Shown one piece after another: positions 18,101-64,000 of a stretch of 64,000 bases of DNA. The stretch spans positions 233,690 through 297,689 of the forward strand of contig JAKMXF010000354.1 of the NCBI GenBank assembly GCA_024704765.1. Reading direction: 5' to 3'. Under the pieces are notes generated by a model. The model ran no database searches. It had not been told where the DNA came from and saw nothing but the letters and a program-made list of their open reading frames with translations. Positions within the stretch are counted from its first letter, which is position 1; the number at the start of each line of letters is the position of its first letter. The stretch is from Oopsacas minuta (lineage: Eukaryota > Animalia > Porifera). Position numbers and translations under genes: made by a program.

Positions 18101-21100
18101 ATCACGGGTATATTGCAATTCCCCGAATTCTCCACAAGGTATACATTTGAATGATCTTATCAAATCTATGAACCATTGATAAGAACAACAAACTGGTATA
18201 AGAACATTGAGAACTTCAATTATCCTAATAATTTCGAACTTGCCCAAATTTTCAAAGAAGATAATGGAAAAGTTCCTCAGATCAATCACGTTACTTCTGC
18301 TTTCACCAAATATATAGAATAACATACCACTTTTCTCAAAACATATTTCTGGAATTACCGCAACCTGAAATCCGCACTCGATTAAAATGTGTAACAAAGA
18401 ATCTGAGAATGATTGAGGATAGTATCCTCGTAAATCAGACTGGATTGATGGAAGGTTTAAGAAAAAGGTCGTTTGAAAGCTACACCATTCTGTTCCTTTG
18501 TTAGATTTTACGATAAAGAAGTTAAATTGACTATTAATTATCTCATGAGTTATACCCTGAGTAAACCATTTCCAGAGACTGTTACTTGTCAGATCCTTTG
18601 AGAACATATTCAACAATAGACAAGTGTATGTATGATGCATTTCCATAGTATTAATTGACTGCATTTTAATTGCTAGATATTTGTAAAGAGTGAACACAGC
18701 TCGTACTAGTGCATCAGATACAATAGCTTCGTTCCATTTTGTTTTTGCCTCTGCTGTGTCTACTAATCCCTGTCTATCCTGTCTCAACTCAAACATTGCA
18801 TGGCAGTGAAAAGGGAGAGCTATCTGAATAGGGAGTGGAAGGAAGCAATAGAGATTTGAATTAGAGCCAGCTGTTCTATCTTGATCAAAAAGATCTAAGT
18901 TTAACGCTACTCCAGCAAAAGGCAGGAGGGATCTAGTATGTGATAACTTGTTTAGGAGGTTAGCACATTGTTCGCTTCCTGTGGCATAAGTAACAATCCA
19001 ATTGGCATCCGATTTATCAGTTATACTCAATTGATACTCACAAGAAGATGATACTGGTGTAGAATTACAACCATTTATCATATGGATCATATGTTCACGA
19101 TTGGCCTGAAGGAAAGGTTGATTCAGTGGGATATTCGCACTTCGCTTTACACAATGTATACTCTTCATATCTTCAGATCTACTGTCTGAATTGATCACGT
19201 AGATGCCCAGAGAATTTATGTGCTGCATGAAAAATAGAACAGATTCTGCCTCTTTTATGAAATTATCTTGAATTTGATTGATATCTTGTTCATTGAATGT
19301 TTTTAGAGAAATCTTTGATGTGATATTACTAAGCCTTATAGGGAGACGGAATAATGTTCCATTAAAAGGTGAAGGCTTCAGGATATCACACCCGAAAATG
19401 TTTTGATAAGGTGCGAATTGATCTTGATAGATTTGTATATATTTCACTAACCTTTCTTGACAGAAATCTATCTTTACTCCTTTCTTTAGGTAATCTCCGT
19501 GTGGATCTAGAATATGAATATAGTTTCTTGATACAAAGCTAGGTAAGTCAGTGAGATGATAGACCGTACAGAATCCGAGACCAAACTGGCCTATAGAAGT
19601 TACATCATGTGCCTTGGTTGCTGCCTCAATCTTCATGATATTGTCAAAATCTGCATCGAGAAAAGTAGAATTGTTGTAAAAGAGAATGGCAGGACCTTGC
19701 CACACCTCCATCTGTGGGGAAAGTAAGGACATATTAGGATGAATCCTCCAATCGAATACTACATTCATTTCTGTTGCCTTAGCATCATCAGCGTTCTGCA
19801 ACATTTCTTTCAATACATTAATCGTTCCATGATACCCTTCTAATATTCCACGTATTCGGTCAGTAACAGCTATTTTTTGTCCAGTTTCTTCAAACCACAT
19901 TTCACTGGGATCGGTTATCCTCTCATTGAAATGAGACACGCCGAGTCTACGAGCTATATCATTTGATATCTTCTCGTGAACGAAGATAAAATCTTGCTCA
20001 ATCATTGAGCGATTTAACCAAATTTGGTCACAGAAAACTAATTTCTCTTCCTTAGGACTATACATTCTCATGTCTTTACCTGGTATATATACTTCTGCCT
20101 GAGAATTGAGATTAACTATCAGATTGAGAATGTTGATAACTAGCTCAAGTTGTGTTGATGTGAGTGCCGTACAAGTTGAGTTAATTTCAGTTAATATAGA
20201 TGAGAGTTGTGCAGAACTGGGAGACTTTTGTATTGCAAGAAAATCAAAAAACTTGACTGCCCTGTATTTGAGATCTTGTAGCGAATAAATGAAAGGCTTC
20301 ATATCAAAAGGAACTTCGATTACAATTCTATTTTGTGAAACAAATGCAACTTCATCTGGAAGATATATCATGTTCAATGGTATACTTTGAATTTCTGCAA
20401 CCCTCCTGTCCAAAAATAAGTAAATATTCGAGACAATTTGATGGATAAGTTCTGAATCATTCTTCGAAATTCTAGACTTCGTTAGCATGGCAAGATGCTC
20501 TACAACCATCTGAGTCGTAATGTCAGTTAGAAATCCAATTTCACGGATAATTTCCTCGCTCACATCATCTTTCATCATTTGAGAGAGAATTAATGTATTT
20601 TGTACAGAACCTACTAAGTATACATCTTGAGAATTACAAATTAATATTTGTAGAGGAGAACACAATTGAGTGCTGGTAGAGAAATCAACATTTTCTGGCC
20701 AATCACCAGGAATAGACTCAGATATTACAAAATTACTTTGGAAGATTTTAAATAGGGTCTTCCAAGATTCATAATCAAATGTGCTACGATAGACGGACAA
20801 AAATTCAACTAAAGCGCCAAATGTGTCTATCCAATCATTACCTGATTTCGAAACAATGGTTTCAAGACTGTATCTGCAAACTTGTAAACATAACTTCAAA
20901 GAGAGATTTTTATAACATTTCAAACCCAGAGACTTTCTCATAACATCAAAATAATCTTCTAAAATGTTGTGTGGAAATAAACCGCTTGTTTGTGGAGGTA
21001 AAAGCCGATTTAAGATGTGGTCTCTAGGATCAAATAGCTGTGAGGGTGCATATAGTTTAACTCGTCCTTCAATTTCTGTGTTGGCAGAAGAATCTAGTAT

Positions 21101-24100
21101 CCATTCCTTACTCTTGAGATAATCCAGATCAAACAGTTTCAGATTGTCCATTACAAAAACTATTAACTGATTTCTAATTCTAGGATCCTTGTGAGTTTGA
21201 ATAAATGGCATTAAATGATATTTGATAAATGCATCATTAGAGAGTGATTTTGAATTCAGCTTCTTGTAGAGTTGTTTTACAGATGAATTGAATGGAGAAA
21301 TGAAATGAGGAGGGTATGCAATATCAAGAGGGATTTTCAACGGAGGTAGAATGATAATCGAGGAAAGTTTTAACCAATCACCAATTGTATTAGGGAATAA
21401 TGGAAGCTGAGAAATTATTTTGGAGTTTTGTGCATTTGTAATAGGAATTAACAATTCTATCAAGTCAAACTTTAAATTCTCATCAACAGTAGATTCTAGA
21501 GCTAGAATGAACGAATTCAGAACGGCTTTAGACTTCAATGCAATAAGGAGACCCTTAGGAATCGGTGGAAGTACAAACTCGCTAAAACGGACAATAAACT
21601 GTTGTCTGTAACATAAATAACAACCTGATGTCTCAAGTAACTTTTCAAGCTGAATCAAATGACTATCTTCACTGTGTTCAATGTAAGTAGTGCGAGATCT
21701 AAGTGGTAGTAAGGACACGATACCATCATTGATTGAATTCTGTGGTAAGATTGGTAAATGAGAAACAGCCTCTAGGAGAGATTTGGAATTATCAATAAAC
21801 TGGAATAGCTTGACAATCCAAGTTGAAGGCGGGTGTGCGGGGTCTGAGGGCATCCAATCGACAGAATCATTCGATTCAAATCTAAATTTGCCAGAAATTG
21901 ATTGAAATAATAGTTCGGCAAATAACTGAGGATCATTAACTAGTTTCGTGACATCAATCAAATTTAGAGGAGTGCATTTAATTGCTATTGAGAGTAAATT
22001 GGAATGAATCTTGGGAGGGATATAAGGATCGACGAATAAACTCTCTAATCCCGGGAATATATTCATGAGAGTAGAAGTATTAGAGCTAATGTATATTGGT
22101 TTGTGTGCGAATATCTGAGGCTCATCGATACTAGCAATTGGGAGGAGGGGAATACCTTCTAGTATCCTTTTTATTCGCTTGGAAGATTCAATTCCTGAAC
22201 ACATAGTGAGAATTCCTTCTAACAAAGGAATGGCTTTATCTCTAGAAGAGAGAAACTCTCTTAGCTCATTCGAACCGGAAAACCTTTTAAGCAACTCCCT
22301 AATAGCATTCTGATTTATAGTTCTATCACTAATTTGTGACTTTATTCCTGGGATGTTGAGGATAACTTCCTGAATAGATTCAGGAACGTCAATAATTGGT
22401 TCATTAAGTTTCTCCAGCAACTCAAGACATACCTTTTCATTGGTCAGATATTGCTTAGTTAAATTTGGTAAAAAGAATCCATCACATATTGATAGCCATC
22501 TCCCACCCAGTTGCTGAGTATATAGCAAGATATTATGCTTAGAGAGTATCTCTAGTCCCCCACAGAGAACAGAACTGAAGGGGGAATTGTCTGGCTCATG
22601 AGGACTCCAACGTGATAACAACTGATAATGATAAGCTAGAGGAGAAGAGTGTTTCAATGCTTTTATAGTAATAAATAAGAAAACAGCGTAGGCAATAGAC
22701 CCCAGATCTTCAGATAGCAGTAGATTCCACCTGGCTCCTATCTCACTCTCATTATCATCTGAAGGCCAGGGAATAGCACGACGATTAGAACTCAGAGAGA
22801 AGTAACCATGGAAATGAAATGGGAATTTGGAATGTAACTGCGTTGGAAGGAAACAGAAAATCTTACCCGTTGAAATATTTAACTCAATATCTTGATCAAC
22901 TATGAAAGGACATTTGAATACTTCGCTAATCACATCGAATACAGTTGAAGGATTTTCCTTATTCCACTTAAACTGCCACCTGCCACAATTTGTCAGATTG
23001 CTAACTCCTGTAGCAAGGGCTACTCCAACCCATGGAAGATAGTCTAGATGATGATGGTTGTAAAATTGTTGTAGTTTTTTCTTTGTAGCTCCAAAACCAA
23101 GGATATTCAATACCAACCATACAGTTTGCTTCTCTTCACCACCAGATTCACGGGACACAGTCGGGAATAAACACACAAAGATCTTAGTGCTTGATTTGAA
23201 CTCTTCAGAAGAAGCGAATTCTACAATTTCCCTTCTATAACTCTTCACATTATCAAGATAAGCAATAGGAATTTCAGCTTTAAAGAGAGCATGATCTACT
23301 CCACATATTCTATCACATACTTCAATAGAAGTAACGTTCTTCAGGAATAACAGTGCATGCTCTGCTTCACTCATAAGTGGGTTAATTAATTTATTTCTTA
23401 CACTTATTACGTCATAGCAATTCTCACTAATTTCAGATTTTACCTTTCTAAATGGAAACCTAAATATAGTTCCTGGGTAGTCTGCCTGTCCTTCAAATCC
23501 AAAGTAACCTTTGTAACATGAGAGGTGTCCATAAAGTTGTGGATTAGTGCTCAGAGACAGGAGTGGCCAGGATATTCCAGTCTGTCCTTGAGTTGTTAGT
23601 TCCATTAGTGGGTGGTTGATACCGAATTGTTTGTCACTCAGTATCGTAGGACAGTCTATAATATAATATATTTGTTAAATTATAGCAGTATATGGTTAGA
23701 TATATATATATATATATATATATATAATAATCAGGGAAAATATGACAGGTACGCGAACTCCGTACCTCACCAATTTCAAACAGGTACCTCAAATCTTGAC
23801 CCTAGAATGGTGAATAAGTCGGTATCGATGTGAACAGCTATACTTTCGAATAGATGCGATAATTACTATAGAGGTCGCAACCTCTATAAAACTTATTGCA
23901 TAGACAGTGCATTCAAATTGTGATCATGTATGTACTCGCATTCATGTACGTATGTCCAAAGTAAAGAGCAATTCCAATTCTAATAATAATAACCACGGAC
24001 ACCTATATACCCAGACGGGAAACTCTCGATCGCGAAGAAAGTTAAAAGGCCTAACTCAAACGATAATAAGTCCAGTTCTACTTTGAATACCGTATTACCT

Positions 24101-28476: not shown

Positions 28477-30387
28477 TTAAGGTTCTTTCGTCGATAAATC
28501 AGCTGTAGTGTCCGTTAAATCATGCTCTGATCTAAAGTTACTATCACTGTCTTCATATTCTAATTCTCCCTCATTCCTTGTGTCTTCTCCTAGATCCTCA
28601 CCTGACTCCTGACCTAGCTGGTTTTCAACGGGAGGATACTCTTCAGTCCCGTCCGTGAAGAATGAGAGAGGAACTGATGAATGCTCAGAAATGAAGTGTA
28701 TAGTGTCACTCCACTCGTCTGTCATCTTCTCAGTGGACAGATCTACTCTTCCCATTTCCTCAAGTAAGTTTATGAGACGCTCAGATGGCATATCCTCACA
28801 GAGTGCACGGATAAGTCTGCAGGCGTGCCTGAATGCATCCTCTTCTGTATAGAACACCAACCAGAAACGAACAAACACTATAGCATGTACATCTTGTAGG
28901 TCACAGTGAGATACTTGTGATAGTACTGGCACTAGATAAGTGGAAAATTCATGGAAGAACAATTCTGGTAATAACTCCAAGTTATGATGGTCTGCATACA
29001 CAGGAAGTAGCTTCAATAGAGCGAATAAGTCTCTCTTCTTAGTCACTTGTATAACTAGAAAGCAGAATAGGGAATTAGCGACAGGATCACATTCTAGGAG
29101 TCTGAGAGTACCAGCTGAGAAGGGGAATGCTTGAGGGGGACCTGTCTCAGATATCTGACCGAGTCTAAGCACAGGAACAATAGAACTGGAAGAGAAGGAG
29201 ATCTTCTCTTGAGTCATGAATAACATAAGATCTGGGATAAACTGAGACAGCATCCTATGATCTAGCGCAGGTTCTGGTGCTATCCTCTTATCTATAATAC
29301 TCAGAGCTTGTAGAGCTATATTTAGCAGATGTAGAGTGAGTAGAACTTCATTACTCTGTCTAGGTAACTTCCTCTTTATAGCTAGTTTAGAAGCATGCTC
29401 TAGAGTTATACGACATAACATATGTACTGTGTGAGGATCTCTAAGAGCCATAACAAGATCGAATAAAGTCTCATAAGAATCAGACATGTATTTCTTAACA
29501 GCTCTGAACTGTTGATGAATCTCTACTAGTCTAGCAGCACGCTGTCGAGGCTCTCCTTGAGCTTGATCCAGTAGAGATATGAAATGACTACAACTCTCTT
29601 GCTCCAGCAGTCGAACAGCTGATGGAGAATCTGTTCTCTGTAGTGACGTCACTAGGTCACATCTGAGTGTACAGAAGTGAGGTTTCCTTGTTTTACTGAA
29701 CAATATACGAATAAATACAGATAGTGTGTTGTATAGCTTGTAAGATCCTCCTACCAGCTCCAATAACTTGTGTACCTCTCTATTACTTCTGCGGATATCA
29801 AGTGGGAGAGTAAAGAACGTTTGTCCAACGGATCCACCTACCATCCCGAGGCTGGAGTTGAGGATCCGCTCTTTAGCTTCAATGTACTCATCCAAGAGAG
29901 GAGATACAGAGTCAGAAAATAGACTCTTGTGCTCCTCTAGCTCCCACACGAGTTGCTTGAGGGGGAGGGGACACTTCTCTAGGAAGTCTGGCTCTGAGGC
30001 TAGAATCCGAAGATACACCTCATCCACTGACTCCATGTGCAGCATCAGATCGAACAGACAGCTGCTGAGCTCTGGCATTGGCATCCTGATAAGCTCCTCC
30101 AGTTTCAGCCTCTGCATAACTTCTTGTAAGAGCACTGGGTCTGCTGACGTAACCTCTTTTCGCATACACACACAGAGCTGACGAATTAGACTCTGATTGT
30201 AGGAGGCCCGACGGATGCCCAAGAGGTCCAGGAGCTCTAGGGGTATCAGAGGGAGAGGGGAGGGAGAGTTGGGCGTGGGGCAGGGGGGCGAGGTCAGATG
30301 AGAGACAGATTTTTGAAATCTACCTATACATTCAGGATATCCAGTCTGGAATTCAGCAAAGTCTGGGAAAGGAGGAATGTCTTCCAT
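28477..30387 (-). CDS. NELFB: Negative elongation factor B (COBRA1), intronless
   Basis: LPLIPLELLDLLG, LKQLVWE...LFSDSVSPLLDEYI, FFTLP...RRSN, KLYNTLSVFIRILFSKTRKPHFCTLRCDL and LVMALRDP match NELF-B. Confidence 0.9.
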   Translation of the reverse strand: MEDIPPFPDFAEFQTGYPECIGRFQKSVSHLTSPPCPTPNSPSPLPLIPLELLDLLGIRRASYNQSLIRQLCVCMRKEVTSADPVLLQEVMQRLKLEELIRMPMPELSSCLFDLMLHMESVDEVYLRILASEPDFLEKCPLPLKQLVWELEEHKSLFSDSVSPLLDEYIEAKERILNSSLGMVGGSVGQTFFTLPLDIRRSNREVHKLLELVGGSYKLYNTLSVFIRILFSKTRKPHFCTLRCDLVTSLQRTDSPSAVRLLEQESCSHFISLLDQAQGEPRQRAARLVEIHQQFRAVKKYMSDSYETLFDLVMALRDPHTVHMLCRITLEHASKLAIKRKLPRQSNEVLLTLHLLNIALQALSIIDKRIAPEPALDHRMLSQFIPDLMLFMTQEKISFSSSSIVPVLRLGQISETGPPQAFPFSAGTLRLLECDPVANSLFCFLVIQVTKKRDLFALLKLLPVYADHHNLELLPELFFHEFSTYLVPVLSQVSHCDLQDVHAIVFVRFWLVFYTEEDAFRHACRLIRALCEDMPSERLINLLEEMGRVDLSTEKMTDEWSDTIHFISEHSSVPLSFFTDGTEEYPPVENQLGQESGEDLGEDTRNEGELEYEDSDSNFRSEHDLTDTTADLSTKEP

Positions 30388-51273: not shown

Positions 51274-52815
51274 ATGCGAAAGAGATTTGTGTATCTAATA
51301 GGAACCCTAATGTTGGTCAGCTTCGTAATGAAATTAACGGCAAGATGGGACTCAGAGAATCGTAATGTAAATCTTTTGTTTGAACTTCAACAAATGAAGA
51401 ACAGCTATATCAATGCAACATTAGAATTGGATAAAGTTAGAGGAAAGCTAAGTGTTAATACAACACATCCTCTGATACAAACGAAATCAAACACAATTGT
51501 AATACCTGATATCAATAAGAATAACAACAATAAAGATCCTCTTCAAAATACAAAGTTTAATCACAAGAAACCAGGGAATGATCATCCATTCGTATTGCTC
51601 AGTGACATTTCAATAGACAAGTTTCGTATTATTCCAGAGAAAGGAAGGAAAAATTACAAATTCGTGTTTGGAATACCAACAATTGCCAGGCCTCATAAAG
51701 AAAAATATTTACTCGAAACTCTAGATTCTCTCCTTAAAGATCCTGCAAGTTTTCAAGAGCTCAATATTCTAATTATCATTTTTGTTGCTGACATGGAAAC
51801 TGATAGATGCACATCTGTCTCCAATATGGTTACAGAGAAACACAGAGAACTCATCGATGGAGGTTTCATAGAGATCCTCTGTCCACATCCTAATCTCTAC
51901 CCGTCTCTAGATAACGTGAGACAGACATTAGGTGATCCAGAAGATCGGTTTAAATGGCGATCAAAACAGAATTTAGATTTTGCTTTCTTGATGTGGTATG
52001 CTAGTGGAAAAGGAGAATATTACCTGCAATTGGAGGATGACATCATAGCTAGTGAAGGGTATACTTACCACCTCAACAGTTATGTGGATAAAGTGAAAAA
52101 TGATTTTTGGTTCCTTATACACTTCACACAGTTAGGATTCATAGGCAAGTTATTGAAGGGTAACGATCTGCTATCATTTGCTCAGTACTTACTACTCTTC
52201 TACATGAATCAACCATGTGATTGGCTACTATACGATTATGGAAGGGGACTTGTTTGTTACTCAGGATTAGATGAAAAGGAGTGCAGGTCTCTTCTAGACA
52301 GTGTCTATTTAATGCACACACCTGCTCTCTTCCAACATGTGGGAACTGTATCTAGTCTTGGAGGTAAGATTCAGAATTTGAAGGACCCAACATTTCAGGA
52401 ACATTTAGCTCTGCCCAAAAATCCTATCTACTCAAATCCTCCAGCTGTAGTCACTTCAACTTTTTCAATTTACCTACATAACACTGCTAATATATTATAC
52501 GAAGGGGTTGGAATGCTATGGTCAGATAAAGTCCTGGAAGGAAATCACATAATAGTCGAGTTTTTACATCCACAAGAGTTGAAGGGGATTCAAATACGAT
52601 CAGGTAATCTAGATAATCAGGAAGACACTTTTGAGAATGGAGTAGTCGAGTTTAAAAGGGCTATGAATGAAGAGTATGAATACTGGTGTGATTTTACAGA
52701 TGGAGAAGCGTTTATATATTCTTCAGAATCAAAGCTGATACATGCGATACGAGTAATAGCGATTGAAAGTCAAAAACACTGGCTACTAATCTCACATTTT
52801 GAATGTTTGAATTAG
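51274..52815 (+). CDS. MGAT4: Alpha-1,3-mannosyl-glycoprotein 4-beta-N-acetylglucosaminyltransferase (GT54)
   Basis: N-terminal signal anchor; FGIPTIAR..YLLETL, KWRSKQNLDFAFLM, YYLQLEDDI, FTQLGFIGKL, LFQHVG..SSLGGKIQNLKD; C-terminal lectin-like domain. Confidence 0.92.
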   Translation: MRKRFVYLIGTLMLVSFVMKLTARWDSENRNVNLLFELQQMKNSYINATLELDKVRGKLSVNTTHPLIQTKSNTIVIPDINKNNNNKDPLQNTKFNHKKPGNDHPFVLLSDISIDKFRIIPEKGRKNYKFVFGIPTIARPHKEKYLLETLDSLLKDPASFQELNILIIIFVADMETDRCTSVSNMVTEKHRELIDGGFIEILCPHPNLYPSLDNVRQTLGDPEDRFKWRSKQNLDFAFLMWYASGKGEYYLQLEDDIIASEGYTYHLNSYVDKVKNDFWFLIHFTQLGFIGKLLKGNDLLSFAQYLLLFYMNQPCDWLLYDYGRGLVCYSGLDEKECRSLLDSVYLMHTPALFQHVGTVSSLGGKIQNLKDPTFQEHLALPKNPIYSNPPAVVTSTFSIYLHNTANILYEGVGMLWSDKVLEGNHIIVEFLHPQELKGIQIRSGNLDNQEDTFENGVVEFKRAMNEEYEYWCDFTDGEAFIYSSESKLIHAIRVIAIESQKHWLLISHFECLN

Positions 52816-53551: not shown

Positions 53552-55462
53552 TTAGTCAGCTGGAGTTACTGTTTCAGGTTGGTCCTGATTCAGCTTCATG
53601 CTGACAGGGATAGACAAATTATGCTTGAATATGTTTTGTGGATCACTCGCACTCTTTGTCGAAACCAGTTTATCCAGATTATCCTCAAAGTATAATCTCA
53701 GGACTGCTTCCTTAGCCTCATGTTCATTTACTCCATATTCATGGCGTATAACATCTATCATTTCAGTATCAATATAATTGTAATAACATCCATCAACTAT
53801 TCTATCAGGGTCTAGAGGTATTGTGGGATTGGCACATGATGATTTAGGCTTTGTATTAGTTGCCCCACCATCCTCCCTTAACTCACCTGGTATGTAATAG
53901 GGATCAGGCACGCCTCCAGTCTTACTGTAAACTTCTTTAAACATCTGATTGATCCAAAGTATATGAATCCAATCTTGGAACGCATTGAAACTATCGTATG
54001 GTATCTCAATCTCATTCATCTCAATTATAGACTTAGGCACTGGGGCTCTCTTCCAATAGGTTTGGTATTGCAGTTTCATGAATGAGTCTCTTTGAGGAAT
54101 TGCTGTTTCATCTGGAGCTATTGTATTGATATATACTCCATAGCTATCAACCTGGACCAGTGACTGTGTCATGTCCACAAAATTCTTCGTTGCTAAGTCC
54201 TTTACGAAATTATCATAGTATTTATTGGTAGTATCAGGGAAACGACCTGCTAAGTCTGCTAACTCTTTGTTTCCCATGGTTAGGAATCTGTATAGCGCTA
54301 TACATTGATCATCTGGGAAATGTTTACGCATATAAGATGATTTATATTTTCCACATTGATTACTGCCAGAAGAATTTAGTGTTTGTGCAGCCTCAAACCA
54401 TGTCAGCTGTTGGGCAATGTTCAGAATGCCTTTTGTGCTAGGATGGCCTACACCAGGAATTGTAGTACTTTTCAAGGTGATTCCAGCATTTTTCAGGTCA
54501 TTTGTAAATTTTAAGAACTTGTCCTGATAGTAAATCTCATCTTGGTTAAAAACTGATTGGAAAAGGAGAGGTATTTCTCCTGCGGATTGATGCATTAAAG
54601 GTAACAGGGTAAAATAAGGAAAATCATTATTAACCAATTCCCAATACAACTTTAGCATGATTATGAATTTTCCGAGGTCTAATCCATTCCAATCGACAGA
54701 GAGTGTCTCCAAGTAAGCGTACTGAGGCGATTGTGGCAGATTCTCGAAATAGTAACAAGTTATAATCCCGAAGTTTCCACCACCTCCCCCTTTACATGCC
54801 CACAACAATTCCTGGTCACCTTTATCTGTTGAGTCAGCCCTGATCTTCTTTAACTCTAATTTATCGTCTTTATCAACACACAAAATATCTACACCGCTTA
54901 GATAGTCTATTGTCAAACCGAATTTCCTCGACAACAATCCATAACCACCTCCACATATGTGTCCACCTAATCCAACACTATAGCACGATCCACCAGGTAT
55001 CACTAGACCGAATTTCCGATACAACTCTTTCACTAGCCACCAATTGGTGCCACCAGCCTCAGCTCCATATGACTTATCACATCCACTTAACTTAAAGACT
55101 TTGTTCATTAATGAAAGGTCGATAACAGCTAGTATTTCCTTATTATAAACAAAATTCTCATAACAATGACCGCCTCCTTTGATGGAGAAATGATGTCTAT
55201 GCTTAGTGTTCGACAAGACTTCATTTAATGCCTGTTTCACTTCGTCAGTGGTTGTAGGAAGATAGATAACCTCACAATTGTTGGCTTCAAACCGCATATT
55301 AAACCCTTGTATTAATCCGACATACTGTATCGACTGTCTAGTAACCTTCAGACAATCTACCGGATCTACAGTTTCCAGTTGTGGTAGTTGTGTAGGTGGT
55401 AAGGCTGCCTGAGGTGCTGGTGCAATTGTATTACGTGTAGACCCTGTACATATTTGCCCCAT
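53552..55462 (-). CDS. FAD-linked oxidase, BBE/hexose-oxidase family, intronless
   Basis: GFNMRF, GGGHCYENFV, PGGSCYSVGLGGHICGGG, GGGGGNFGIITCYYF, GSNQCGKYKSSYM, KLQYQTYW, GGVPDP, GCYYNY, DPQNIF. This motif series matches Chondrus hexose oxidase and actinobacterial AknOx/Dbv29-type enzymes. Confidence 0.9.
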   Translation of the reverse strand: MGQICTGSTRNTIAPAPQAALPPTQLPQLETVDPVDCLKVTRQSIQYVGLIQGFNMRFEANNCEVIYLPTTTDEVKQALNEVLSNTKHRHHFSIKGGGHCYENFVYNKEILAVIDLSLMNKVFKLSGCDKSYGAEAGGTNWWLVKELYRKFGLVIPGGSCYSVGLGGHICGGGYGLLSRKFGLTIDYLSGVDILCVDKDDKLELKKIRADSTDKGDQELLWACKGGGGGNFGIITCYYFENLPQSPQYAYLETLSVDWNGLDLGKFIIMLKLYWELVNNDFPYFTLLPLMHQSAGEIPLLFQSVFNQDEIYYQDKFLKFTNDLKNAGITLKSTTIPGVGHPSTKGILNIAQQLTWFEAAQTLNSSGSNQCGKYKSSYMRKHFPDDQCIALYRFLTMGNKELADLAGRFPDTTNKYYDNFVKDLATKNFVDMTQSLVQVDSYGVYINTIAPDETAIPQRDSFMKLQYQTYWKRAPVPKSIIEMNEIEIPYDSFNAFQDWIHILWINQMFKEVYSKTGGVPDPYYIPGELREDGGATNTKPKSSCANPTIPLDPDRIVDGCYYNYIDTEMIDVIRHEYGVNEHEAKEAVLRLYFEDNLDKLVSTKSASDPQNIFKHNLSIPVSMKLNQDQPETVTPAD

Positions 55463-56696
55463 CTTGAACTATACAAATAATGCAATGTATATTTAAGGAG
55501 CCTATATATAGTGTCTCTCAGTGTTACTACGTATAAGGCTCATATCCAATCTGGGTAATTAATCAAAACCTAAATATTAACAGCTAATCACTAATATAGA
55601 GATTATATATTGTTTTCTTTACATCTGATTCCATCATCATTTTACGGGTAATATATGTATATGATAATTTAGTTAGAGGATGCGGATCTTCACTTTAGGA
55701 AATATATTATTTCATACTGACAATTAGTGTACATACATGCATGGATATTTAAGAATCTGTTTTATATGGGGCTAGGCGGCAGACCCTCTTACTATCAATC
55801 GCTATATTTTTCCTGGTTAATATCCTAGCTTTGAGTTATTACCTCTTTAATTTTACTTACAAATTCTATATTATAGGGAATATTCGGCATTCATTAGTTG
55901 GGTTAGGTCTCCTATTGAAAGAGGTCAATTGTACACGAAAGAGGATAATTGTCTACTATCTAGCGTAATTGTATATTTAAAAGTTCAATGTTACTTAAGG
56001 TACTAATACTAAACAGCTTATTGGTGTGATATATGCATTTTACTCAAAACGAGTTTATTATAAATATTCATAGTGTTAACTTTGTTATTTTTCTTATTTC
56101 ATTTGTTCTTTATCATGCTTTTGATGATGTTCTACTCTTTTAAGTTCATGTATTTGATTCCCTGTTCTCTCGTTTATGTATTCGTAGTAATATGACAGTG
56201 CCCAGTACATTTTTCGAAGGTTTGTTCTACTTGGTTATTATTCATATCAATCAAATATTTCTCCGGGTTCTTCATGCACATTCCTTGTCTTACCATTGTT
56301 ATCATGTTTGACGCGTATATAATGCTACTTGTCGCTTTCATTCTCTTTTCTATGAGCCTTTGTTTACATTATATTCATAAAAGCACTAATAAATTACAAA
56401 AGAGAAAGTTGAAAATGCGAAGTTCTGGTTCAGCGTATTGTGTTACACATGTGTAGCCGTTTAGAGCAACCCTGTACGTATATTTTGAGATTTGGAGAAT
56501 TTGTTAAGCTTATTCTCATAAAAAAACAACAATAAGTTACATATTATTCATCCAAAAGTGTGAAAATTGGATTCAACATATTCGATATATTTAGTGAAGT
56601 TTTATTGAATTCTATATACTTCCTTGATGATAAACATGATAAATACATAGTTATGCGACAATTTCAAAATTGCATAGCGTAGATCCTTTCCTTGAC

Positions 56697-56717
56697 AACA
56701 AACAAACAAACAAACAA
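56697..56717. repeat. (AAAC)n microsatellite
   Basis: ACAAACAAACAAACAAACAA run. Confidence 0.8.
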
Positions 56718-56797
56718 TCGATGAGATTTAAAAATATAGATTCTTGTACATGTCTTAAAGTTTCCAGCGGTTTCTAGCAGTTTCTGGCAGCTTCTAC

Positions 56798-57089
56798 CAA
56801 CATATGGTGAATATCTGTTTACTTTACATTCATAAAGTAAACAAATTTCAAAATTGTGGCAGAATCATGCTTTTAAAGGCTATACTGGGGTAACCGAGTT
56901 TCCTGAGTCCGATTATGATATTGTACACAACATATAGTGAATTTTTGTTTACTTTTAGGTACATAAAGCAAACAAACTTTAACATTGTGGTAGATTCATA
57001 CTTTCAACGGTTATACAGGGGTAATCGAGTATGTTGAGTCCGAATATGATATTGTAAACAACATATTGTAAATATTTGTTTACTTTTGG
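56798..57089 (+). repeat. ~130-bp tandem repeat, ~2.3 copies
   Basis: CAACATAT.GT.AAT.T.TGTTTACTTT at 56798, 56928 and 57059 (periods 130 and 131). Confidence 0.85.
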
Positions 57090-57523
57090 GGAAATATGTA
57101 ATTATTTTTATTTTTGTTTATTAATTGTCCAAATACATTTAACCACTACACGAAAGGGTTAATTATACACGAAGCAACCTGATTGTCCTTTTGCATTATG
57201 AGCTTGGTGAATGCAATTTTTTCCCTTGTTCATGTTTCATTGTTTTAGTAACCTTCTAAACTGAAACTCTTTCATTCTCTATTGCTTTTTGTACTGAAAT
57301 TCATTCAAATTTCCTTGCGTTCCTTTAACCTGTTCTGAAGAGGTTTTCAAACATGACACAAACATACTAGTCATCATAATTACTATTTAATATAACATAC
57401 TTAAGAATAAGAAATCGTAAAATCGCACTTAAGATTTTATTCTTTATTACGTAAATATTGAAAAACAAATTAATAATATTACAAATTTATTAAAATCCTA
57501 CCAAGTACCAGAATTAGATAATC

Positions 57524-60500
57524 TCAAATAAATTTAGAGATTGCATCTGATAGTCTTAGAGAAATGTCAACAGCATTTGCTGCAACAGTTTTTATCCGAC
57601 AGCTATTGTTCTCAGACTTAACTGCATCTCTAAACTCGTCCTCATTATGAAATAGAGATAATTCACAGAATTTTCTTCCCAAACTAAAGTTATCCCTACA
57701 GTACTCTATACCAGTGGAGATCTTAGCTATAACATCCTTCCACTTGTAGTATTCAACTTGTTGGTTGTGTTTGATTATTTTCATCTTAGTTTTCAGACGT
57801 TCACAAATTGTTGGTATTTCTCCTTCATTAATACTTATAAGAGAGCTTTTCAAGCCATCAGGAAGAAGCAGTCTATAGATATCAGAATCCTTCTGTACAG
57901 GCCTGGCACTCTCACTTCGTAATCTAATATCGTGTGTCTTACTTTGGTCAACAACATTCCTATTACCCACTATGGTTGCTAGCATCCATATGAGAGGACG
58001 CTCCGAGATACTAACAACATGGAGATTGTCATCCAGATTGATTCGTATATCAAAAGAAAATTGCCATTGAATTTCTACACGCCAGGTATAAGATTTACAA
58101 ATGTCTACTTGTCGCACAAATCCACATTCCTCTAATGATTTTACGTATACAGATTTAGTTCTTTCCAATTGAATGTCTTCATCTGTTCCTGTCATTGGCA
58201 GCCCAGGACAGAATGCGCTAGTGGTAGACTTAAGTACCTTTTCATTATATTTAGAAGTCTTTTTAATAATTTTGTTAAAGGATTTGTCATGACTCGGTTG
58301 CTGTGATATTGTAGAGTTTGTCTGTAATTCCTTCTTATCTTCAGCTGAATCTATCTGACGATTTCCTTTTACTAAGCATTTTTCGAATTCATCCAAGTAT
58401 AACGAATCTCCAACCTCTTGAAAAGAATCAGGACCATCTAATATATAGAAAAAGCCGAATCTTGATTTAAATTTGAGATTTTTAAGAAGATCCTTATTAT
58501 TCGACGGAAATCGTGACAATTGATTCCAGAGGAGAGTTTGTATCCTATTTACGCCCTCGCTCTTCCAATTAGGGTTAACCCTTTGTTCTGCAGAAATTAG
58601 AAAGCTCTTATGGTTATTAGTATGAATCTGCTTGCAACAAGCTTGTTCAAAACTGGACAGTTTGACACGACATTTCGCTGAATATTCGGACATAATAATT
58701 AGCGTACTTCCATCTAGTATATAATGGTAAGAATTTGATTTGTATTTCCTGGTTAAGGCTGAATTTGATTCCATTAGCGATATTTCAGTAGCTAATTTGT
58801 GTATAGCACTGGCAGAGCCCTGAGCAGTGAGGAGTAGATTACGCCCTGATGATTCTATCTTAATCAAGGCACCTGTTGCAGTGTTCCAAGATTTTTCATA
58901 GAATCGTGTAGATGACCGAATACGATCACTCATAAATGGAGTAAATCGCTTTGCAAATGTTAACTGAACTTGAACACGTTCAAACAACTTAAATATATTC
59001 CTAGTATACGCCAAACAGTGCCAACCTTGAAATAAAAGTGCTGATATTTTATTGAGTGCAGTTACACTGATCGTATGAATAGGATCCCCCTGTATAGGCC
59101 ATGTATATACTATTTCATTCACACTCTCAGACGTTATCTTATAACCTCTACGAAAGAATTCTTCTAACATTAATCCTAACTTCTTCTCAATCTCTGCATT
59201 CATTAACAAGTTAGTCAAAGATTGCAAAATAGTGTTATCACATTCTAAATCACTTGTCACAGTTTCTGGTTTACATAGCATCTCATCATAGATGTATAGG
59301 ATCAGAGCTTCAAATTCTGCGGTTAGAATAAGCCCAGTGCTTTTGGGTGAAGTGTGACACTTTAATATACCAATATGTCTACCCCAGTGAATGAGAATCC
59401 AGAAAAATGCGAAGAATATACCTCCAGTAGTACGATAGAGTTGTAGAATATATTTTGATTTGAGTACTCCATCGCTCTCTATACTTACATCTACACTTAT
59501 GTCTGATCGTGTGTCCATTTCAGAATCCATGGTTAGTGTAATGATGGGAAAATCTAGGTTAAACTTTTCTATTTTAGAAAGAGCTACCTCCTCAAGCGAA
59601 GGTGATACAAACAACCGGAGAAGGTGGAGTCGTGTTTTTTTAATATCCATTTTTGCAAGATTATCTTTTCCGATAAAATCAATTCCAAAATTCGTTAGTG
59701 AGATGGAAATATCTAAATCAGATTCCAACTCACAAAGAAATTTTGAAACTGAACCGAATACCTCTACATTGAATACTTTACCATTTTCAGGAATATTTAT
59801 TGTTTTTTCTTGTTGAATACAAAAGTCATTAATAGCTGAGCTTATCTTCCCTAATAAACACATCTTAGCATTTACATTTGTGTGAATAAATTCGCTTTGT
59901 TGCATGATATATTCCCTCGCTGTGCTGCCAATGGAGCAGTGTAAATCTAGTTCAGTATGGTTTGGTTGTTTTGCTAATAAATCACATAATTCTTTTCTCA
60001 TTATCCAGGCAAAAGATAGAAAAGTTGTCTCTTCACTCTGTTGTTGCTGATACACGGTTAGGTACCAGGCAGCTGCTTTTTTAGCATAACAATCTAGAGG
60101 AGTATTCCTTTCGAATATTTCTCTAAATTCTTCTGTGAGATAGCGCATAGCGGTTATAAGCGCACTTGTAACTTTGTTTTTATCAGCAGACAAGAAGGGG
60201 TGACACTTAATGATTAAACCAAGTATAACTTCAGCTTCTGTCTCTATACCAAATGATAACATTATTCTCTGTAACGCATTAGAATACTCGAAATATCTAA
60301 TTTTAGCATCTTGCATGTAACCTTCGTGACCTGGGATTTGGAATATCTCTAATGGAATGCTATGTGGTATTTTCTGTTTAAAAGTTTGTTTGTTGTAGTA
60401 GTTTAATATATTCTGCCATTCATTAGTCTCAAAACACACAGATTTAGCCAATTGATAGAGTTCTCCTAACAACTTTTCCGAAGGATAAGCAGTTGATTCC

Positions 60501-63500
60501 GTCTTCTCCATAAAATCAGGATAGCCCTTTTCCTTAATTAATACTTTAGCTTCATCGGGTATAGTTGGAGTTATTCCGGTCTTAGGAGAGTCTACAGATA
60601 GAGAAGCTAATCTAGCAAGTTGTATTGACAACTCATCTCTTGAACCATTTTCCTTCATATCGCTAATAGCCACGTGATAATGCGATATTATTCCTAACAG
60701 ATCGTTACTTATAATTTTACAATATGACTCAGCTAATATAGTTTGTATGTTGTCATGCATATGTAATGGAATTTTGGTGTCTATAGGATTTTTTCTCTCT
60801 GGTTCCTTACTCTTTAGCTGTTCTTTGTACTCATTTAGTACATTATCATAGTTTAATGAAGGGAATATTGCACTAATCGGCGGAATAAGATCTTTATCCC
60901 AAATAATACCAAACTCATCTCCATCCAAATCCCCTCCCCCAGTACAAGCAGGCAGTGACGTACTGCCTTTACTAGGAAATACTATAACATTGTGAAGATG
61001 ATGTAATTCTATCTTATCTACAGCAGTAGGAGTAAGGAGATCTCCAGGATGAAGACACGGGTTCTTATACACTAAAATACGTCCTGTAAGAGGTGCCTTA
61101 GTTGATGTATCTTCAAAAGTTACATATACCTCTCTATCCTCTAATATTCCTATAGGATCAGGTATACCCATTAGTAAACAGCCGTTTTTCAGAGGAATAT
61201 GAAACTTTTTTATCAAATTTTGAATTTTAAAGGTGTATATACATCTGAGTAAAGAGAGGTGGAAAGGCTCAGATAGAATATCAATACAGTTAATTGCAGT
61301 ATTTGAATTGTGAGGGAGATGAGAGGTAAGCTCAGTACTTGCTATAGTAATATCTGTGAATATTCGTACGTTTCTTTCAAGTACTTCTTTGTAAATAGCT
61401 CTTAGACGAGGTTTAGGATCCCAATTCTGTTCGCTACAATCTTCTAAACTAGTCAATAAAGTCATCATCTGAGTGTTAAGATGTAAATCATTATATTTGC
61501 CTAATTTCACTAAACAAAGAGTAGATTGTGTCCATTCAATCTTCTTCATTGACTTTCTATAGAGTATATCGCAGTGTAGTAACCCGCTGTTGAAATCAGT
61601 ATCAGTATCAGCATCAACTATAGTGAATACTCCCTTTAGACCAGCTAGCCTCACTTGTATAGCTGAAATATTCTGTAATGAGGCATTTCCTACAATTTCT
61701 GAATTATCAAATATCTTCTCAGCTACAGATCTTCTAATTTTACCATTCCCATCAGTCAAGTTAAGACCATTGTCAGCAAACAGATCAGATAAACAGTGAG
61801 TATTAGCCTCAGGTATATCACAGATAGGATGATCTGAAGTACAAAACAATCCTAGTCTAGACAGATACTTAGTCTCATTAGCAACAATAGAATCTCCCAT
61901 CAACTCATGTCTCATATTTCTTAACGTTTCTGAAACACAACCATCTCTAATGTGAATAAATATCGCTCGCTTACTTCTTAATTGACTCCCACTACAAACC
62001 AAAAAGTAGAAATTCAACCCATTAATTGTAACACCGTTAATAATTATGTTCTTAACACGATCAATGACGTCAGAACTCTTAAGCGCCTCTCCGTGTTCTT
62101 CTCTGAAAGCTAAATTCAGGAATCTCTCTTTCGGGAATTTCCTATAAAGTCTGTTACGTTGAGTAAATACAGATTGTAGAGGAATTACAGTAGAGGGAGT
62201 TACCATAGCACACTCGATGTAGCAATAGTTATCATGAGAAGAGGCTGGGCTAGATAGAGGGTAGTCTTTGAGAGTGTCCAAATATTTATCGAAAGAGCTC
62301 TGCAAATCAAAAAAGTAATAAGTTGTATCTTTACATCTCAAGGATAGAAGATAAGAGAATGTTTTAGACAGAGCCCTAATAAGAGATAAATCTGCTACAT
62401 AAATCTCCTTAGTAAATTTACGAATAGTTTCTTCAGGTAGACAAATATTTCTTATAGATTTTAATACATAAAATTCCCATAGACAGTCTTGCATTTCTTT
62501 ATCCCAGTATAGAGAATTATCTGATAAAATTATTGCCTCAGTCTCCATGGAGGTACACTCAATAATACGTGAATCATATACTGGAACAGATAGAGTATTT
62601 GGTGAGTGGAGAAATATCCATAATTTACTCCAATTAGACGTCTTGTATGCAAGTGAGATCCCGAAGACAGGAGACTCTCCGAAGAATCTCAGGAATGAAC
62701 AGTTATCACATGACAACATTTCTCCAGATTGAGATAGGACTTTAGGACAGAAGGAAAGAGGTAGGTATAGCATGACGTCATTCTCTCTCCAATCAGCTAG
62801 CATAAATAGAAAGATAGAAGCGAATGGAATCTCAATTGTCAACCGAGAATCTGCCTGGTTACGGATAGTTATGTGTATGGTGCGGTCAGATGAGAGTTCA
62901 AAAATTCCTTTCTCTCCGAAAGTATTCGCTTCTAATTGCTCAGTTACCTGAAAAGTATGTTTATCGTTAAATTTTCCCCATGAGATCTTATTTACAGTCC
63001 ACTTTGTTTGATATTTCATTTCTTTATCTAGAGGTACTCGAACCCTTGTCCACACCTCAGGACCTCCGTTTCCGATAGAGAATGACCACTGCACAGTCAA
63101 GAGTTTGTAACGCTCATAAATGTTTGGTTTTTGAGTTTGCAAACCCAAATTTAATAGAGAATCTTCGAATGGGAATATTCCATTAGATTTCCAACGAGAA
63201 TTACAAGCAGCTTGTTCAATACGCTTAACTTTCAAGAAATATTTTTCAAATAGAATTTTAGCAATATTATCCTGAATATCGAATAATTCATGTGTTCCTG
63301 TTAAGTAGAATTCGACTGCACATTCTGTCGATGACAATATGTTACATTTCTGACTGTGGTCAGAGCAAGAAACTGTATTTTCAATATCTTTTTGAATATT
63401 TTCTATGATATTTTCTGTGAATGGAGAAGGAAATTTAGTCTCTGAATGGTGTTCTTTTAAAACAGATTTTACAGTATATTCTTGAGCTTGGATTTCTTCA

Positions 63501-64000
63501 AATGTACGATTCTCATCTTCAGATAGAATCAAAATAAACCTGCTATTATCCCATTTTCTAGCTCTCCCTTTACTCTGTTTATAAGAAGTTAGAGATTTTA
63601 AGCCATTAAATCTGATAACGACATCACACACAGGGATATCAAGACCTTCTTCCAATACAGACGTGCTAACCAGGAGATTACACTTCCCGTTACGGAAATT
63701 CTCAATTATTTCTTCCTGATCATTAACCCAGTTCATACCAAATGGTCCTGACTGTCCAACTATTTTCAAAGGAGAAAATTTCTGATTAACCTTCTGGTCT
63801 TCCTTCAGAACAGTAGCTAAAATAGAAGCCATACGGCGGGTCTCAACGAATATAATAATTTTAGAATTATCAGAAATTTCATTGAGGATATTAAACAGCT
63901 CTTGTAGTCTTGGAGAGAAGCTCGGCTGATGATCCAATCCCTCAAATATATCCATATCTCGTAGCTTCTGGTGAGCATATGTAACTCCTAACATCTCTGT
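57524..64000 (-). CDS. Multidomain protein, 5' end outside window: Dicer/RLR-type helicase C + cellular RNA-dependent RNA polymerase + Cid1/TRF4-type nucleotidyltransferase + KH-like and unknown C-terminal region
   Basis: Frame open to the window edge. Helicase: IIFVETR, LLVSTSVLEEGLDIP, SYKQSKGRAR. RdRP: QVRLAGLKG, YKNPCLHPGD, GGDLDGD (60917-60931), SVDSPKTG, YPDFMEK, KAAAWY, FLSFAW. NTase: FGS...SDLDISI (DLD 59711-59719), VDVSI (D 59489-59491), LIHWGRHIGI, LGLMLEEFF. Confidence 0.93.
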   Translation of the reverse strand, partial: TEMLGVTYAHQKLRDMDIFEGLDHQPSFSPRLQELFNILNEISDNSKIIIFVETRRMASILATVLKEDQKVNQKFSPLKIVGQSGPFGMNWVNDQEEIIENFRNGKCNLLVSTSVLEEGLDIPVCDVVIRFNGLKSLTSYKQSKGRARKWDNSRFILILSEDENRTFEEIQAQEYTVKSVLKEHHSETKFPSPFTENIIENIQKDIENTVSCSDHSQKCNILSSTECAVEFYLTGTHELFDIQDNIAKILFEKYFLKVKRIEQAACNSRWKSNGIFPFEDSLLNLGLQTQKPNIYERYKLLTVQWSFSIGNGGPEVWTRVRVPLDKEMKYQTKWTVNKISWGKFNDKHTFQVTEQLEANTFGEKGIFELSSDRTIHITIRNQADSRLTIEIPFASIFLFMLADWRENDVMLYLPLSFCPKVLSQSGEMLSCDNCSFLRFFGESPVFGISLAYKTSNWSKLWIFLHSPNTLSVPVYDSRIIECTSMETEAIILSDNSLYWDKEMQDCLWEFYVLKSIRNICLPEETIRKFTKEIYVADLSLIRALSKTFSYLLSLRCKDTTYYFFDLQSSFDKYLDTLKDYPLSSPASSHDNYCYIECAMVTPSTVIPLQSVFTQRNRLYRKFPKERFLNLAFREEHGEALKSSDVIDRVKNIIINGVTINGLNFYFLVCSGSQLRSKRAIFIHIRDGCVSETLRNMRHELMGDSIVANETKYLSRLGLFCTSDHPICDIPEANTHCLSDLFADNGLNLTDGNGKIRRSVAEKIFDNSEIVGNASLQNISAIQVRLAGLKGVFTIVDADTDTDFNSGLLHCDILYRKSMKKIEWTQSTLCLVKLGKYNDLHLNTQMMTLLTSLEDCSEQNWDPKPRLRAIYKEVLERNVRIFTDITIASTELTSHLPHNSNTAINCIDILSEPFHLSLLRCIYTFKIQNLIKKFHIPLKNGCLLMGIPDPIGILEDREVYVTFEDTSTKAPLTGRILVYKNPCLHPGDLLTPTAVDKIELHHLHNVIVFPSKGSTSLPACTGGGDLDGDEFGIIWDKDLIPPISAIFPSLNYDNVLNEYKEQLKSKEPERKNPIDTKIPLHMHDNIQTILAESYCKIISNDLLGIISHYHVAISDMKENGSRDELSIQLARLASLSVDSPKTGITPTIPDEAKVLIKEKGYPDFMEKTESTAYPSEKLLGELYQLAKSVCFETNEWQNILNYYNKQTFKQKIPHSIPLEIFQIPGHEGYMQDAKIRYFEYSNALQRIMLSFGIETEAEVILGLIIKCHPFLSADKNKVTSALITAMRYLTEEFREIFERNTPLDCYAKKAAAWYLTVYQQQQSEETTFLSFAWIMRKELCDLLAKQPNHTELDLHCSIGSTAREYIMQQSEFIHTNVNAKMCLLGKISSAINDFCIQQEKTINIPENGKVFNVEVFGSVSKFLCELESDLDISISLTNFGIDFIGKDNLAKMDIKKTRLHLLRLFVSPSLEEVALSKIEKFNLDFPIITLTMDSEMDTRSDISVDVSIESDGVLKSKYILQLYRTTGGIFFAFFWILIHWGRHIGILKCHTSPKSTGLILTAEFEALILYIYDEMLCKPETVTSDLECDNTILQSLTNLLMNAEIEKKLGLMLEEFFRRGYKITSESVNEIVYTWPIQGDPIHTISVTALNKISALLFQGWHCLAYTRNIFKLFERVQVQLTFAKRFTPFMSDRIRSSTRFYEKSWNTATGALIKIESSGRNLLLTAQGSASAIHKLATEISLMESNSALTRKYKSNSYHYILDGSTLIIMSEYSAKCRVKLSSFEQACCKQIHTNNHKSFLISAEQRVNPNWKSEGVNRIQTLLWNQLSRFPSNNKDLLKNLKFKSRFGFFYILDGPDSFQEVGDSLYLDEFEKCLVKGNRQIDSAEDKKELQTNSTISQQPSHDKSFNKIIKKTSKYNEKVLKSTTSAFCPGLPMTGTDEDIQLERTKSVYVKSLEECGFVRQVDICKSYTWRVEIQWQFSFDIRINLDDNLHVVSISERPLIWMLATIVGNRNVVDQSKTHDIRLRSESARPVQKDSDIYRLLLPDGLKSSLISINEGEIPTICERLKTKMKIIKHNQQVEYYKWKDVIAKISTGIEYCRDNFSLGRKFCELSLFHNEDEFRDAVKSENNSCRIKTVAANAVDISLRLSDAISKFI

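Follow-up and report, generated by a model that had tools for sequence, protein, structure and literature searches.

The 64,000-nucleotide stretch of the genome of the glass sponge Oopsacas minuta that was analyzed here (contig JAKMXF010000354.1 of assembly GCA_024704765.1; hereafter the window) carries a complete single-exon coding sequence for a 636-residue flavoprotein oxidase of the berberine bridge enzyme (BBE)-like type. It lies at 53552–55462 on the minus strand—stop codon included—and all features of this gene given below are on the same strand. An initial annotation had read it as an intronless, hexose-oxidase-like bicovalent flavoenzyme and as a candidate for horizontal acquisition. 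The analysis shows that a bacterial oxidase gene entered the nuclear genome of an ancestor that the sampled glass sponges share, became adapted to its host, and was kept by selection. The enzyme encoded by it probably oxidizes amino sugars and thereby makes hydrogen peroxide, as judged from its conserved residues.

The oxidase gene and its product

The open reading frame (ORF) is uninterrupted and starts with an ATG in the context AAGATGG. An in-frame TAG stands 6 nt ahead of this ATG, at 55471–55469, just where it had been noted before, and a TATA-like box (TATATATAGG) at 55501–55510, 39–48 nt 5' of the ATG, is a candidate promoter element as read from the sequence. The gene is indeed a single ORF, yet this was uninformative: nearly all of the 17 other ORFs of at least 150 amino acids in the window are likewise uninterrupted, and in such an intron-poor region the absence of introns carries no weight. 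An ORF of equal length at 28477–30387 was considered as a paralogue of the oxidase and rejected, as it encodes the unrelated NELF-B.

Both domains of the BBE-like subfamily are found above their Pfam cut-offs: FAD_binding_4 (PF01565, PCMH-type; residues 65–195, 54878–55270) with 49.4 bits against a cut-off of 26.4, and the C-terminal BBE domain (PF08031; residues 560–619, 53606–53785), which contains Tyr563, with 32.4 bits against 20.6. NCBIfam holds no family-specific model for this protein and gave just weak matches to BagG/BagK far under the cut-off. The AF2 model, calculated from 60 aligned sequences, reaches a mean predicted local distance difference test score (pLDDT) of 90.1 and a predicted TM-score (pTM) of 0.89. 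It adopts the fold of the vanillyl-alcohol oxidase (VAO) family with its F-domain and S-domain, with a Foldseek probability of 1.00 to Protein Data Bank (PDB) entry 7zzk, TamL, GilR, and AknOx.

The motifs on which the initial annotation relied—GGGHCYENF with His99, PGGSCYSVG with Cys160, GKYKSSYM, KLQYQTYW, GGVPDP, and GCYYNY—all occur in the protein, collinear with their counterparts in 7zzk, a bacterial enzyme of solved structure. The codon of His99 (55166–55168) corresponds to that of His64 in the N-acetylhexosamine oxidase NagOx, the 8-alpha-N1-histidyl link to flavin adenine dinucleotide (FAD). The codons G158-S-C160-Y-S-V163 (54974–54991) include Cys160, the counterpart of NagOx Cys123 and its 6-S-cysteinyl link, and Gly158 and Val163, which form an oxidase-type oxygen gate. 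Gly at the position Cys-2 together with Val at Cys+3 is the gate rule described for oxidases among BBE-like enzymes (PMC4898691), and this combination is present in 11/11 sponge copies. His99, Cys160, and His168—the residue at Cys+8 that aids formation of the S–C bond—are found in every full-length sponge copy. The oxidase is hence most likely bicovalently flavinylated via His99 and Cys160. The flavoenzyme part of the initial annotation stands on these two residues; the hexose oxidase part has to be revised, as the nearest characterized enzyme is the N-acetylhexosamine oxidase 7zzk (E 1e-80).

Relatives and phylogenetic placement

Among 5.8 billion protein clusters, a word-indexed search returned only 11 close relatives of 51–67% identity, from about ten other eukaryote-like assemblies in the European Nucleotide Archive (ENA); all have 571–631 residues save for one 430-residue fragment. 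Below this close cluster there is a steep drop: the next proteins, 505–567 residues long, are about 40% identical (BLASTP) and, where named, come from Bradyrhizobium, Ascidiimonas, Acidobacteriota, Hyphomicrobiales, and similar bacteria. When 1.84 billion representatives were searched exhaustively with HMMER, one representative of the sponge cluster scored 963 bits and the next match 374 bits. In the clusters ranking next, the named members are likewise bacterial—Hormoscilla, Vibrio coralliilyticus (on a 1.5-Mb contig), Streptomyces, Rhodobacteraceae, Rhodospirillales, and Buttiauxella—and a protein-language-model atlas likewise returned bacterial clusters first. Across the two large searches, bacterial sequences are at most about 47% identical to the oxidase, and no eukaryote-like sequence outside the sponge cluster ranks above the bacterial matches, with non-bilaterian animals being thinly sampled. 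One protein of sponge-like composition (P0144) was considered as a second eukaryotic case and rejected, as it is located in a bacterial ABC-transporter operon.

Maximum-likelihood trees were calculated in a quick version of 148 rows and a careful version of 69 rows (LG+C20+F+G4 by posterior mean site frequencies; support as ultrafast bootstrap/SH-aLRT, the Shimodaira–Hasegawa-like approximate likelihood ratio test), and both agree. The sponge sequences form one clade (100/100) with a long stem and two subclades. Its sister is a single metagenomic protein, P0124 (99/98), and next to both stand a Bradyrhizobium/alphaproteobacterial group and a Vibrio representative, with support of 81–93. Together they are nested in a 100/99 clade of Pseudomonadota, Bacteroidota, Acidobacteriota, Actinomycetota, and Cyanobacteriota. 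A Ralstonia/Paraburkholderia clade is the sister of this five-phylum clade of 49 rows, with an actinomycete-rich clade beyond the two. The first tree also took in distant BBE representatives; these fall into the actinomycete half and not beside the sponges, hence the sponge stem does not carry the root. With the sponge clade nested inside a bacterial clade and the root elsewhere, the donor was a bacterium. The phylogeny that had been called for as a check—here of bacterial and sponge rows—thus places the sponge clade within bacterial diversity, and, together with the steep gap in identity between the sponge cluster and bacteria, bears out the horizontal acquisition.

P0124 is encoded on a 2.5-kb metagenome contig (L088, ENA ERZ1303167) of GC content 0.53, with one frame break near position 826 and more than 400 nt on each side without an obvious gene. 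It is 44–49% identical to bacterial and 42–46% identical to sponge proteins.

Integration into the host genome

The window is a gene-dense eukaryotic region. Besides the oxidase it encodes HORMA, ankyrin, AP-mu, DHX37, a 4829-residue sacsin-like ORF, NELF-B, a piece of an SNF2-type helicase, an NVL-type AAA ATPase, RRF, a fusion of pseudouridine-5'-phosphate (PsiMP) glycosidase and kinase, a BRD7/9-like protein, MGAT4, and a helicase–RdRP–nucleotidyltransferase. The oxidase is flanked by MGAT4 (51274–52815) and the helicase–RdRP gene (57524–63994), an embedding among animal genes that agrees with the earlier description. The sacsin-like ORF (9116–23605, minus strand) runs through 4829 codons as a single frame with four sacsin domains (688 bits); very long single-exon genes are typical of glass-sponge genomes.

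The same neighborhood—NVL, RRF, the PsiMP glycosidase–kinase, the oxidase, the BRD7/9-like gene, MGAT4, and the helicase–RdRP gene—is found in the assemblies ERZ25766962, ERZ25071281, ERZ25069837, and ERZ23487945, and at least five of the close relatives are embedded in it. It has undergone small local rearrangements: the oxidase stands between MGAT4 and RdRP in the window and between the kinase fusion and BRD elsewhere. The closeness of MGAT4 in several assemblies may reflect just inherited synteny.

In composition, the oxidase cannot be told from its surroundings. Its GC content is 0.393 and its GC content at third codon positions (GC3) 0.352, with a GC3 of 0.24–0.41 in 17 neighboring ORFs; its relative synonymous codon usage (RSCU) correlates with that of the neighbors at 0.77, within their own range of 0.61–0.95. 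Related oxidase loci have a window-like GC content of 0.35–0.42, whereas the loci of bacterial homologues have a median of 0.67. The host-like composition claimed at first thus holds for GC, GC3, and RSCU alike.

The physical linkage is seen in the reads as well. Contigs from reads of the source sample span the oxidase together with its two flanks. In the data of a second study, a DNA contig—about 96% identical, with 49 differences in 1218 aligned letters—joins 55912 directly to 57394. Independent data therefore link the upstream region of the oxidase to the 3' end of RdRP. As this contig of a closely similar sample skips the repeat-rich stretch 55913–57393 entirely, the latter is an insertion polymorphism between oxidase and RdRP. 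The core of the repeat (56334–57121) shows a summed contig depth 100- to 1000-fold over its flanks in all four DNA data sets, and is hence of very high copy number.

Selection, probable loss, and duplication

Between the oxidase in the window and its syntenic orthologues, the rate of nonsynonymous substitutions (dN) is 0.22–0.25 at saturated synonymous sites (dS), with dN/dS of 0.08–0.15 (Nei–Gojobori); a further pair—P0002 and the copy at 9824–11716 of L004 (ERZ25072740)—gives 0.26. These low values of 0.08–0.26 argue for long-standing purifying selection. Together with the host-like composition and the conserved synteny, this supports the domestication that had been proposed. The ERZ25072740 copy is represented in the database by a call (P0007, 571 residues) that starts too late; its full-length ORF begins with MDQVC, with Asp in place of Gly2.

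Not all copies are kept this way. The syntenic copy at 9950–11293 of L005 (ERZ25069837) comprises residues 182–628 only and shows a dN/dS of 0.46. Since the first 181 residues are missing, and both FAD-linking residues with them, the oxidase was probably lost in this lineage.

The gene has also been duplicated. Four recent paralogues on a 1.1-Mb contig of ERZ20067936 show dN/dS of 0.7–1.0. On this assembly's contig ptg000050l (L001, 10001–21875), oxidase paralogues at 10001–11875 and 13780–15642 are interleaved with four copies of a 402-residue pyridoxal 5'-phosphate (PLP) decarboxylase, whose best matches are the bacterial-type histidine decarboxylase model NF002748 (195 bits, below its cut-off) and the plant serine decarboxylase 8jg7. 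This array may be a repeated two-gene metabolic cluster. A second paralogue, P0006, is found at four loci (L091–L094; ERZ23490157, ERZ26869290, ERZ23487945, and ERZ23489137) between pieces that match the NAT10-type domains GNAT_acetyltr_2 and tRNA_bind_2, as if it lay within an intron of a NAT10-like gene. The P0006 unit of ERZ26869290 is duplicated in inverted orientation.

Predicted activity

NagOx (also HexNAcO) from Ralstonia solanacearum (EC 1.1.3.29; PDB 7zzk; PMC9299179, PMC9850908) is the top match to the oxidase both by sequence (E 1e-80) and by fold. Its published list of active-site residues (PMC9850908) was mapped onto the sponge protein via the HMMER alignment and via a family alignment with Ralstonia homologues. 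Fifteen of the 16 residues are identical: NagOx His64 corresponds to His99, Tyr66 to Tyr101, Ser122 to Ser159, Cys123 to Cys160, Tyr137 to Tyr174, Leu139 to Leu176, Leu251 to Leu286, Tyr345 to Tyr373, Gln381 to Gln437, Asp383 to Asp439, Gln410 to Gln465, Gln412 to Gln467, Tyr414 to Tyr469, Tyr459 to Tyr560, and Tyr462 to Tyr563. The one remaining change, from Val334 to Leu362, is conservative.

Two of these positions deserve mention for the chemistry. Leu286 (codon 54605–54607) is the counterpart of Leu251 in the N-acetyl pocket, and each sponge copy has either Leu or Ile at this position. In NagOx, the exchange L251R moves the preference to glucose (PMC9850908); by this result, Leu or Ile in the pocket points to N-acetylated sugars over plain hexoses. 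Tyr563 (codon 53774–53776) corresponds to Tyr462, the proposed catalytic base.

As the NagOx active site and the oxidase-type gate are conserved, the protein is predicted to be a bicovalent C1 oxidase of an N-acetylhexosamine-type sugar that releases hydrogen peroxide. In such a mechanism, the enzyme would bind FAD covalently through His99 and Cys160, and the C1 hydroxyl of the sugar—N-acetylglucosamine (GlcNAc), N-acetylgalactosamine (GalNAc), or chitobiose-like reducing ends—would be oxidized to the lactone with Tyr563 as base. The electrons would then pass from the reduced FAD enzyme to O2 to yield H2O2, as might be expected from the conserved active site and oxygen gate. A weak hint from genomic context is an aldose 1-epimerase gene that adjoins the oxidase homologue in one cyanobacterial relative. 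In a Thermoanaerobaculia metagenome-assembled genome (L016, 5711–7201), the oxidase homologue has a neighbor about 1 kb away that encodes a LodA-type L-lysine epsilon-oxidase, which also produces H2O2.

Sponge-specific inserts and the N-terminal tail

The sponge copies have four inserts in common that bacterial homologues lack, and most of these inserts are modelled with confidence. Insert 1 (residues 400–422, 54197–54265) occurs in all sponge copies, and P0124 is the only non-sponge protein with a counterpart of similar length at this position. Insert 2 (residues 479–492, 53987–54028) is of variable length, insert 3 (residues 527–550, 53813–53884) follows the GGVPDP motif, and insert 4 comprises residues 573–579 (53726–53746). 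Neither insert 3 nor insert 4 is found in P0124.

Among the closest bacterial proteins, about one-third have a twin-arginine (Tat) export signal and about half have no signal. For the sponge oxidases, neither a signal peptide nor a transmembrane or hydrophobic segment is predicted. They open instead with a tail of 30–40 residues that is predicted to be disordered—residues 1–32 in O. minuta. Its first codons, M-G-Q-I-C-T (55445–55462), encode a candidate motif for N-myristoylation at Gly2 and palmitoylation at Cys5. The start MGQxC[T/S/A] is present in seven of the 11 full-length sponge copies, across both subclades, and, as far as sequence can tell, combines the Met-Gly start, the small or hydroxyl residue at position 6, and the nearby Cys expected of a dually acylated N terminus; AKAP18-alpha, which starts with MGQLCC, is an example of dual acylation. 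The Tat signal of some nearest relatives would hence have given way to the disordered MGQICT tail, and a myristoyl/palmitoyl anchor might hold the oxidase on the cytosolic face of a membrane. The MGQxC tail thus suggests a membrane-tethered, cytosol-facing enzyme, although this is the weakest step of the proposed mechanism.

Weighing of alternative explanations

Taken as a whole—an ancient transfer from a bacterium, NagOx-type oxidation of N-acetylhexosamines, and a lipid-anchored product—the explanation given here is regarded as likely, and several points weigh against it. The sister P0124 comes only from a 2.5-kb metagenome contig, and the donor is placed no finer than bacteria. The related assemblies are taken to be other glass sponges by their synteny, composition, and shared inserts. 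Just one member of the enzyme family is characterized, and it is about 33–36% identical to the sponge oxidase. The active-site set is conserved throughout the bacterial family as sampled here, a sample partly chosen by the pattern KLQYQTYW, which is itself one of the conserved motifs; hence, the match of the active site alone cannot fix the substrate. The gene neighborhoods of bacterial homologues are heterogeneous, with no consistent operon that would fix it either, and one bacterial relative is located in a peptide/amino-acid operon. Gly2 is replaced in four of the 11 full-length sponge copies, so a real lipid anchor would be dispensable in some lineages, and an H2O2-producing enzyme that faces the cytosol is unusual. 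Finally, the sequencing runs that match the gene are DNA-like and none is recorded as RNA, which does not show that the gene is silent.

As to the origin of the gene, an origin in a bacterial symbiont or contaminant, with misassembly fusing the gene to sponge DNA, would account for the fact that the nearest homologues outside the small sponge cluster are all bacterial, and microbes are present in glass-sponge samples. However, GC content and codon usage fit the neighbors and not the bacterial loci, the same eukaryotic genes surround the oxidase in several independent assemblies, contigs of the source sample span both flanks, and a contig of a second study links the gene to RdRP. Identity to any bacterial sequence does not exceed about 47%, and the four inserts are common only to the sponge copies. 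The initial annotation had argued against contamination; by conserved synteny, host codon usage, and the independent contig, contamination is now refuted for practical purposes. Vertical descent from an early eukaryotic or opisthokont ancestor, with loss nearly everywhere but in glass sponges, might draw on the BBE-like enzymes of fungi, plants, and a red alga, on databases that are thin for non-bilaterian animals, and on a comparison that was made without the hexose oxidase (HOX) of the red alga Chondrus. It is nevertheless very improbable: the sponge clade sits several nodes deep in a well-supported bacterial clade, both large searches gave no other eukaryote-like sequence above the bacterial matches, and plant and fungal structures are far more distant (E 1e-27 to 1e-15) than bacterial ones (E 1e-80 to 1e-47). 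A transfer by way of another eukaryote or a virus, which took up the bacterial gene first and passed it to sponges, deserves somewhat more attention and still appears unlikely. P0124 would be its trace, being the sister of the sponge clade (99/98) with an insert at the position of insert 1 on a short contig that appears to be noncoding over more than 400 nt to either side of the gene. Yet this contig has a GC content of 0.53 and no eukaryotic hallmark, the best non-self matches of the protein are bacterial-type at 44–49%—about as distant as the sponge proteins—and inserts 3 and 4 are missing.

As to function, the substrate might be a small amine-derived or other secondary metabolite rather than a free sugar, converted jointly with a bacterial-type PLP decarboxylase in a pathway of two enzymes. 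This is conceivable, if doubtful: the two paralogues of ERZ20067936 interleaved with four histidine/serine-decarboxylase-like genes of 402 residues evolve fast (dN/dS 0.7–1.0), and many structurally solved bacterial relatives—TamL, AknOx, GilR, CrmK, and Dbv29—tailor natural products. On the other hand, the O. minuta oxidase and its syntenic orthologues are not beside such a decarboxylase, the sugar-binding residues of NagOx are all retained, and the gene next to one cyanobacterial relative encodes an aldose 1-epimerase. That the O. minuta gene is a decaying relic without present function could be read from the lack of matching runs recorded as RNA, from the truncated copy of ERZ25069837 with residues 182–628 only, and from near-neutral paralogues elsewhere. 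It is improbable all the same, as the ORF is complete with all cofactor-binding and catalytic residues intact, and dN/dS against the syntenic orthologues stays at 0.08–0.15 despite saturated synonymous sites.

Possible biological role

Sponges digest bacteria, and GlcNAc is a major product of the breakdown of peptidoglycan, chitin, and glycans. In the sponge, oxidation of GlcNAc by the transferred enzyme could remove or mark this sugar and could yield H2O2 for signaling or defense. Oxidative defense and secondary metabolism, the roles suggested in the initial annotation, are conjectural. A more far-reaching idea is that several separate bacterial transfers gave rise to an amino-sugar module, in which a lipid-anchored oxidase turns GlcNAc from digested bacteria or glycans into a local H2O2 signal or defense, and that one lineage recruited the oxidase together with the PLP decarboxylase into a repeated two-gene cluster. 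We offer this as a speculation that, on present evidence, has rather little chance of being correct in full.

Comparison with known systems

BBE-like bicovalent flavoprotein oxidases have been described from bacteria, fungi, and plants (PMC4898691). Literature searches that combined berberine bridge enzyme or hexose oxidase with sponge or horizontal gene transfer found no report of an animal BBE-like oxidase, and the genome papers on O. minuta (PMC10280926) and Aphrocallistes vastus make no mention of horizontal transfer, FAD, or berberine bridge enzymes.

Among the characterized enzymes, NagOx is the closest and shares with the sponge oxidase the two domains and the His and Cys links to FAD, whereas identity is just about 33–36%. 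The four inserts and the N-terminal tail make the sponge protein about 125 residues longer than NagOx, and it lacks the Cys291–Cys316 pair found in NagOx at the base of a flexible loop. The loop itself is present at the same place, as the lower pLDDT of the sponge model at residues 331–350 illustrates. In the trees, the sponge clade lies outside the Ralstonia clade—the kin of NagOx—and in the adjacent bacterial clade. Since the Ralstonia/Paraburkholderia clade branches as sister to the 49 rows among which the sponge sequences fall, the sponge oxidase belongs to the same family but is not an orthologue of NagOx.

Dbv29 (2wdw), TamL (2y08), AknOx (2ipi), GilR (3pop), and CrmK (5i1v) show the same bicovalent FAD fold, with target-normalized TM-scores of 0.86–0.89 and E-values of 1e-47 to 1e-57. 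They are farther away than NagOx, act on large antibiotic scaffolds, and are encoded in biosynthetic clusters. The hexose oxidase of Chondrus crispus (EC 1.1.3.5) is 35% identical to HexNAcO, bicovalent, and carries the same extended loop (PMC9299179). Many bacterial relatives of the sponge oxidase bear the label "hexose oxidase" at the Joint Genome Institute (JGI), and Chondrus HOX is not among the named cluster members of 20 representatives. The plant and fungal BBE-like oligosaccharide oxidases (GOOX, ChitO, AtBBE-like, and Phl p 4) belong to the same superfamily as the sponge oxidase, share its cofactor chemistry, and follow the same oxygen-gate rule, but are much more distant, at 17–20% identity when aligned by fold. 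Unlike the sponge oxidase, which has no signal peptide, they are secreted, and they are glycosylated.

As in other transfers from bacteria to sponges, an intact gene for a bacterial-type enzyme is found among animal genes. The oxidase is a new animal member of a known enzyme family, brought about by a known kind of event, and is an old and clean case of it: conserved synteny, lineage-specific inserts, and later duplications come together, and bacterial export may have been exchanged for a eukaryotic lipid anchor. It exemplifies how an early-branching animal lineage made a bacterial peroxide-making sugar oxidase its own. For the poorly known EC 1.1.3.29 family, it provides a second, very divergent sequence; the family is of relevance for biosensors and carbohydrate biocatalysis.

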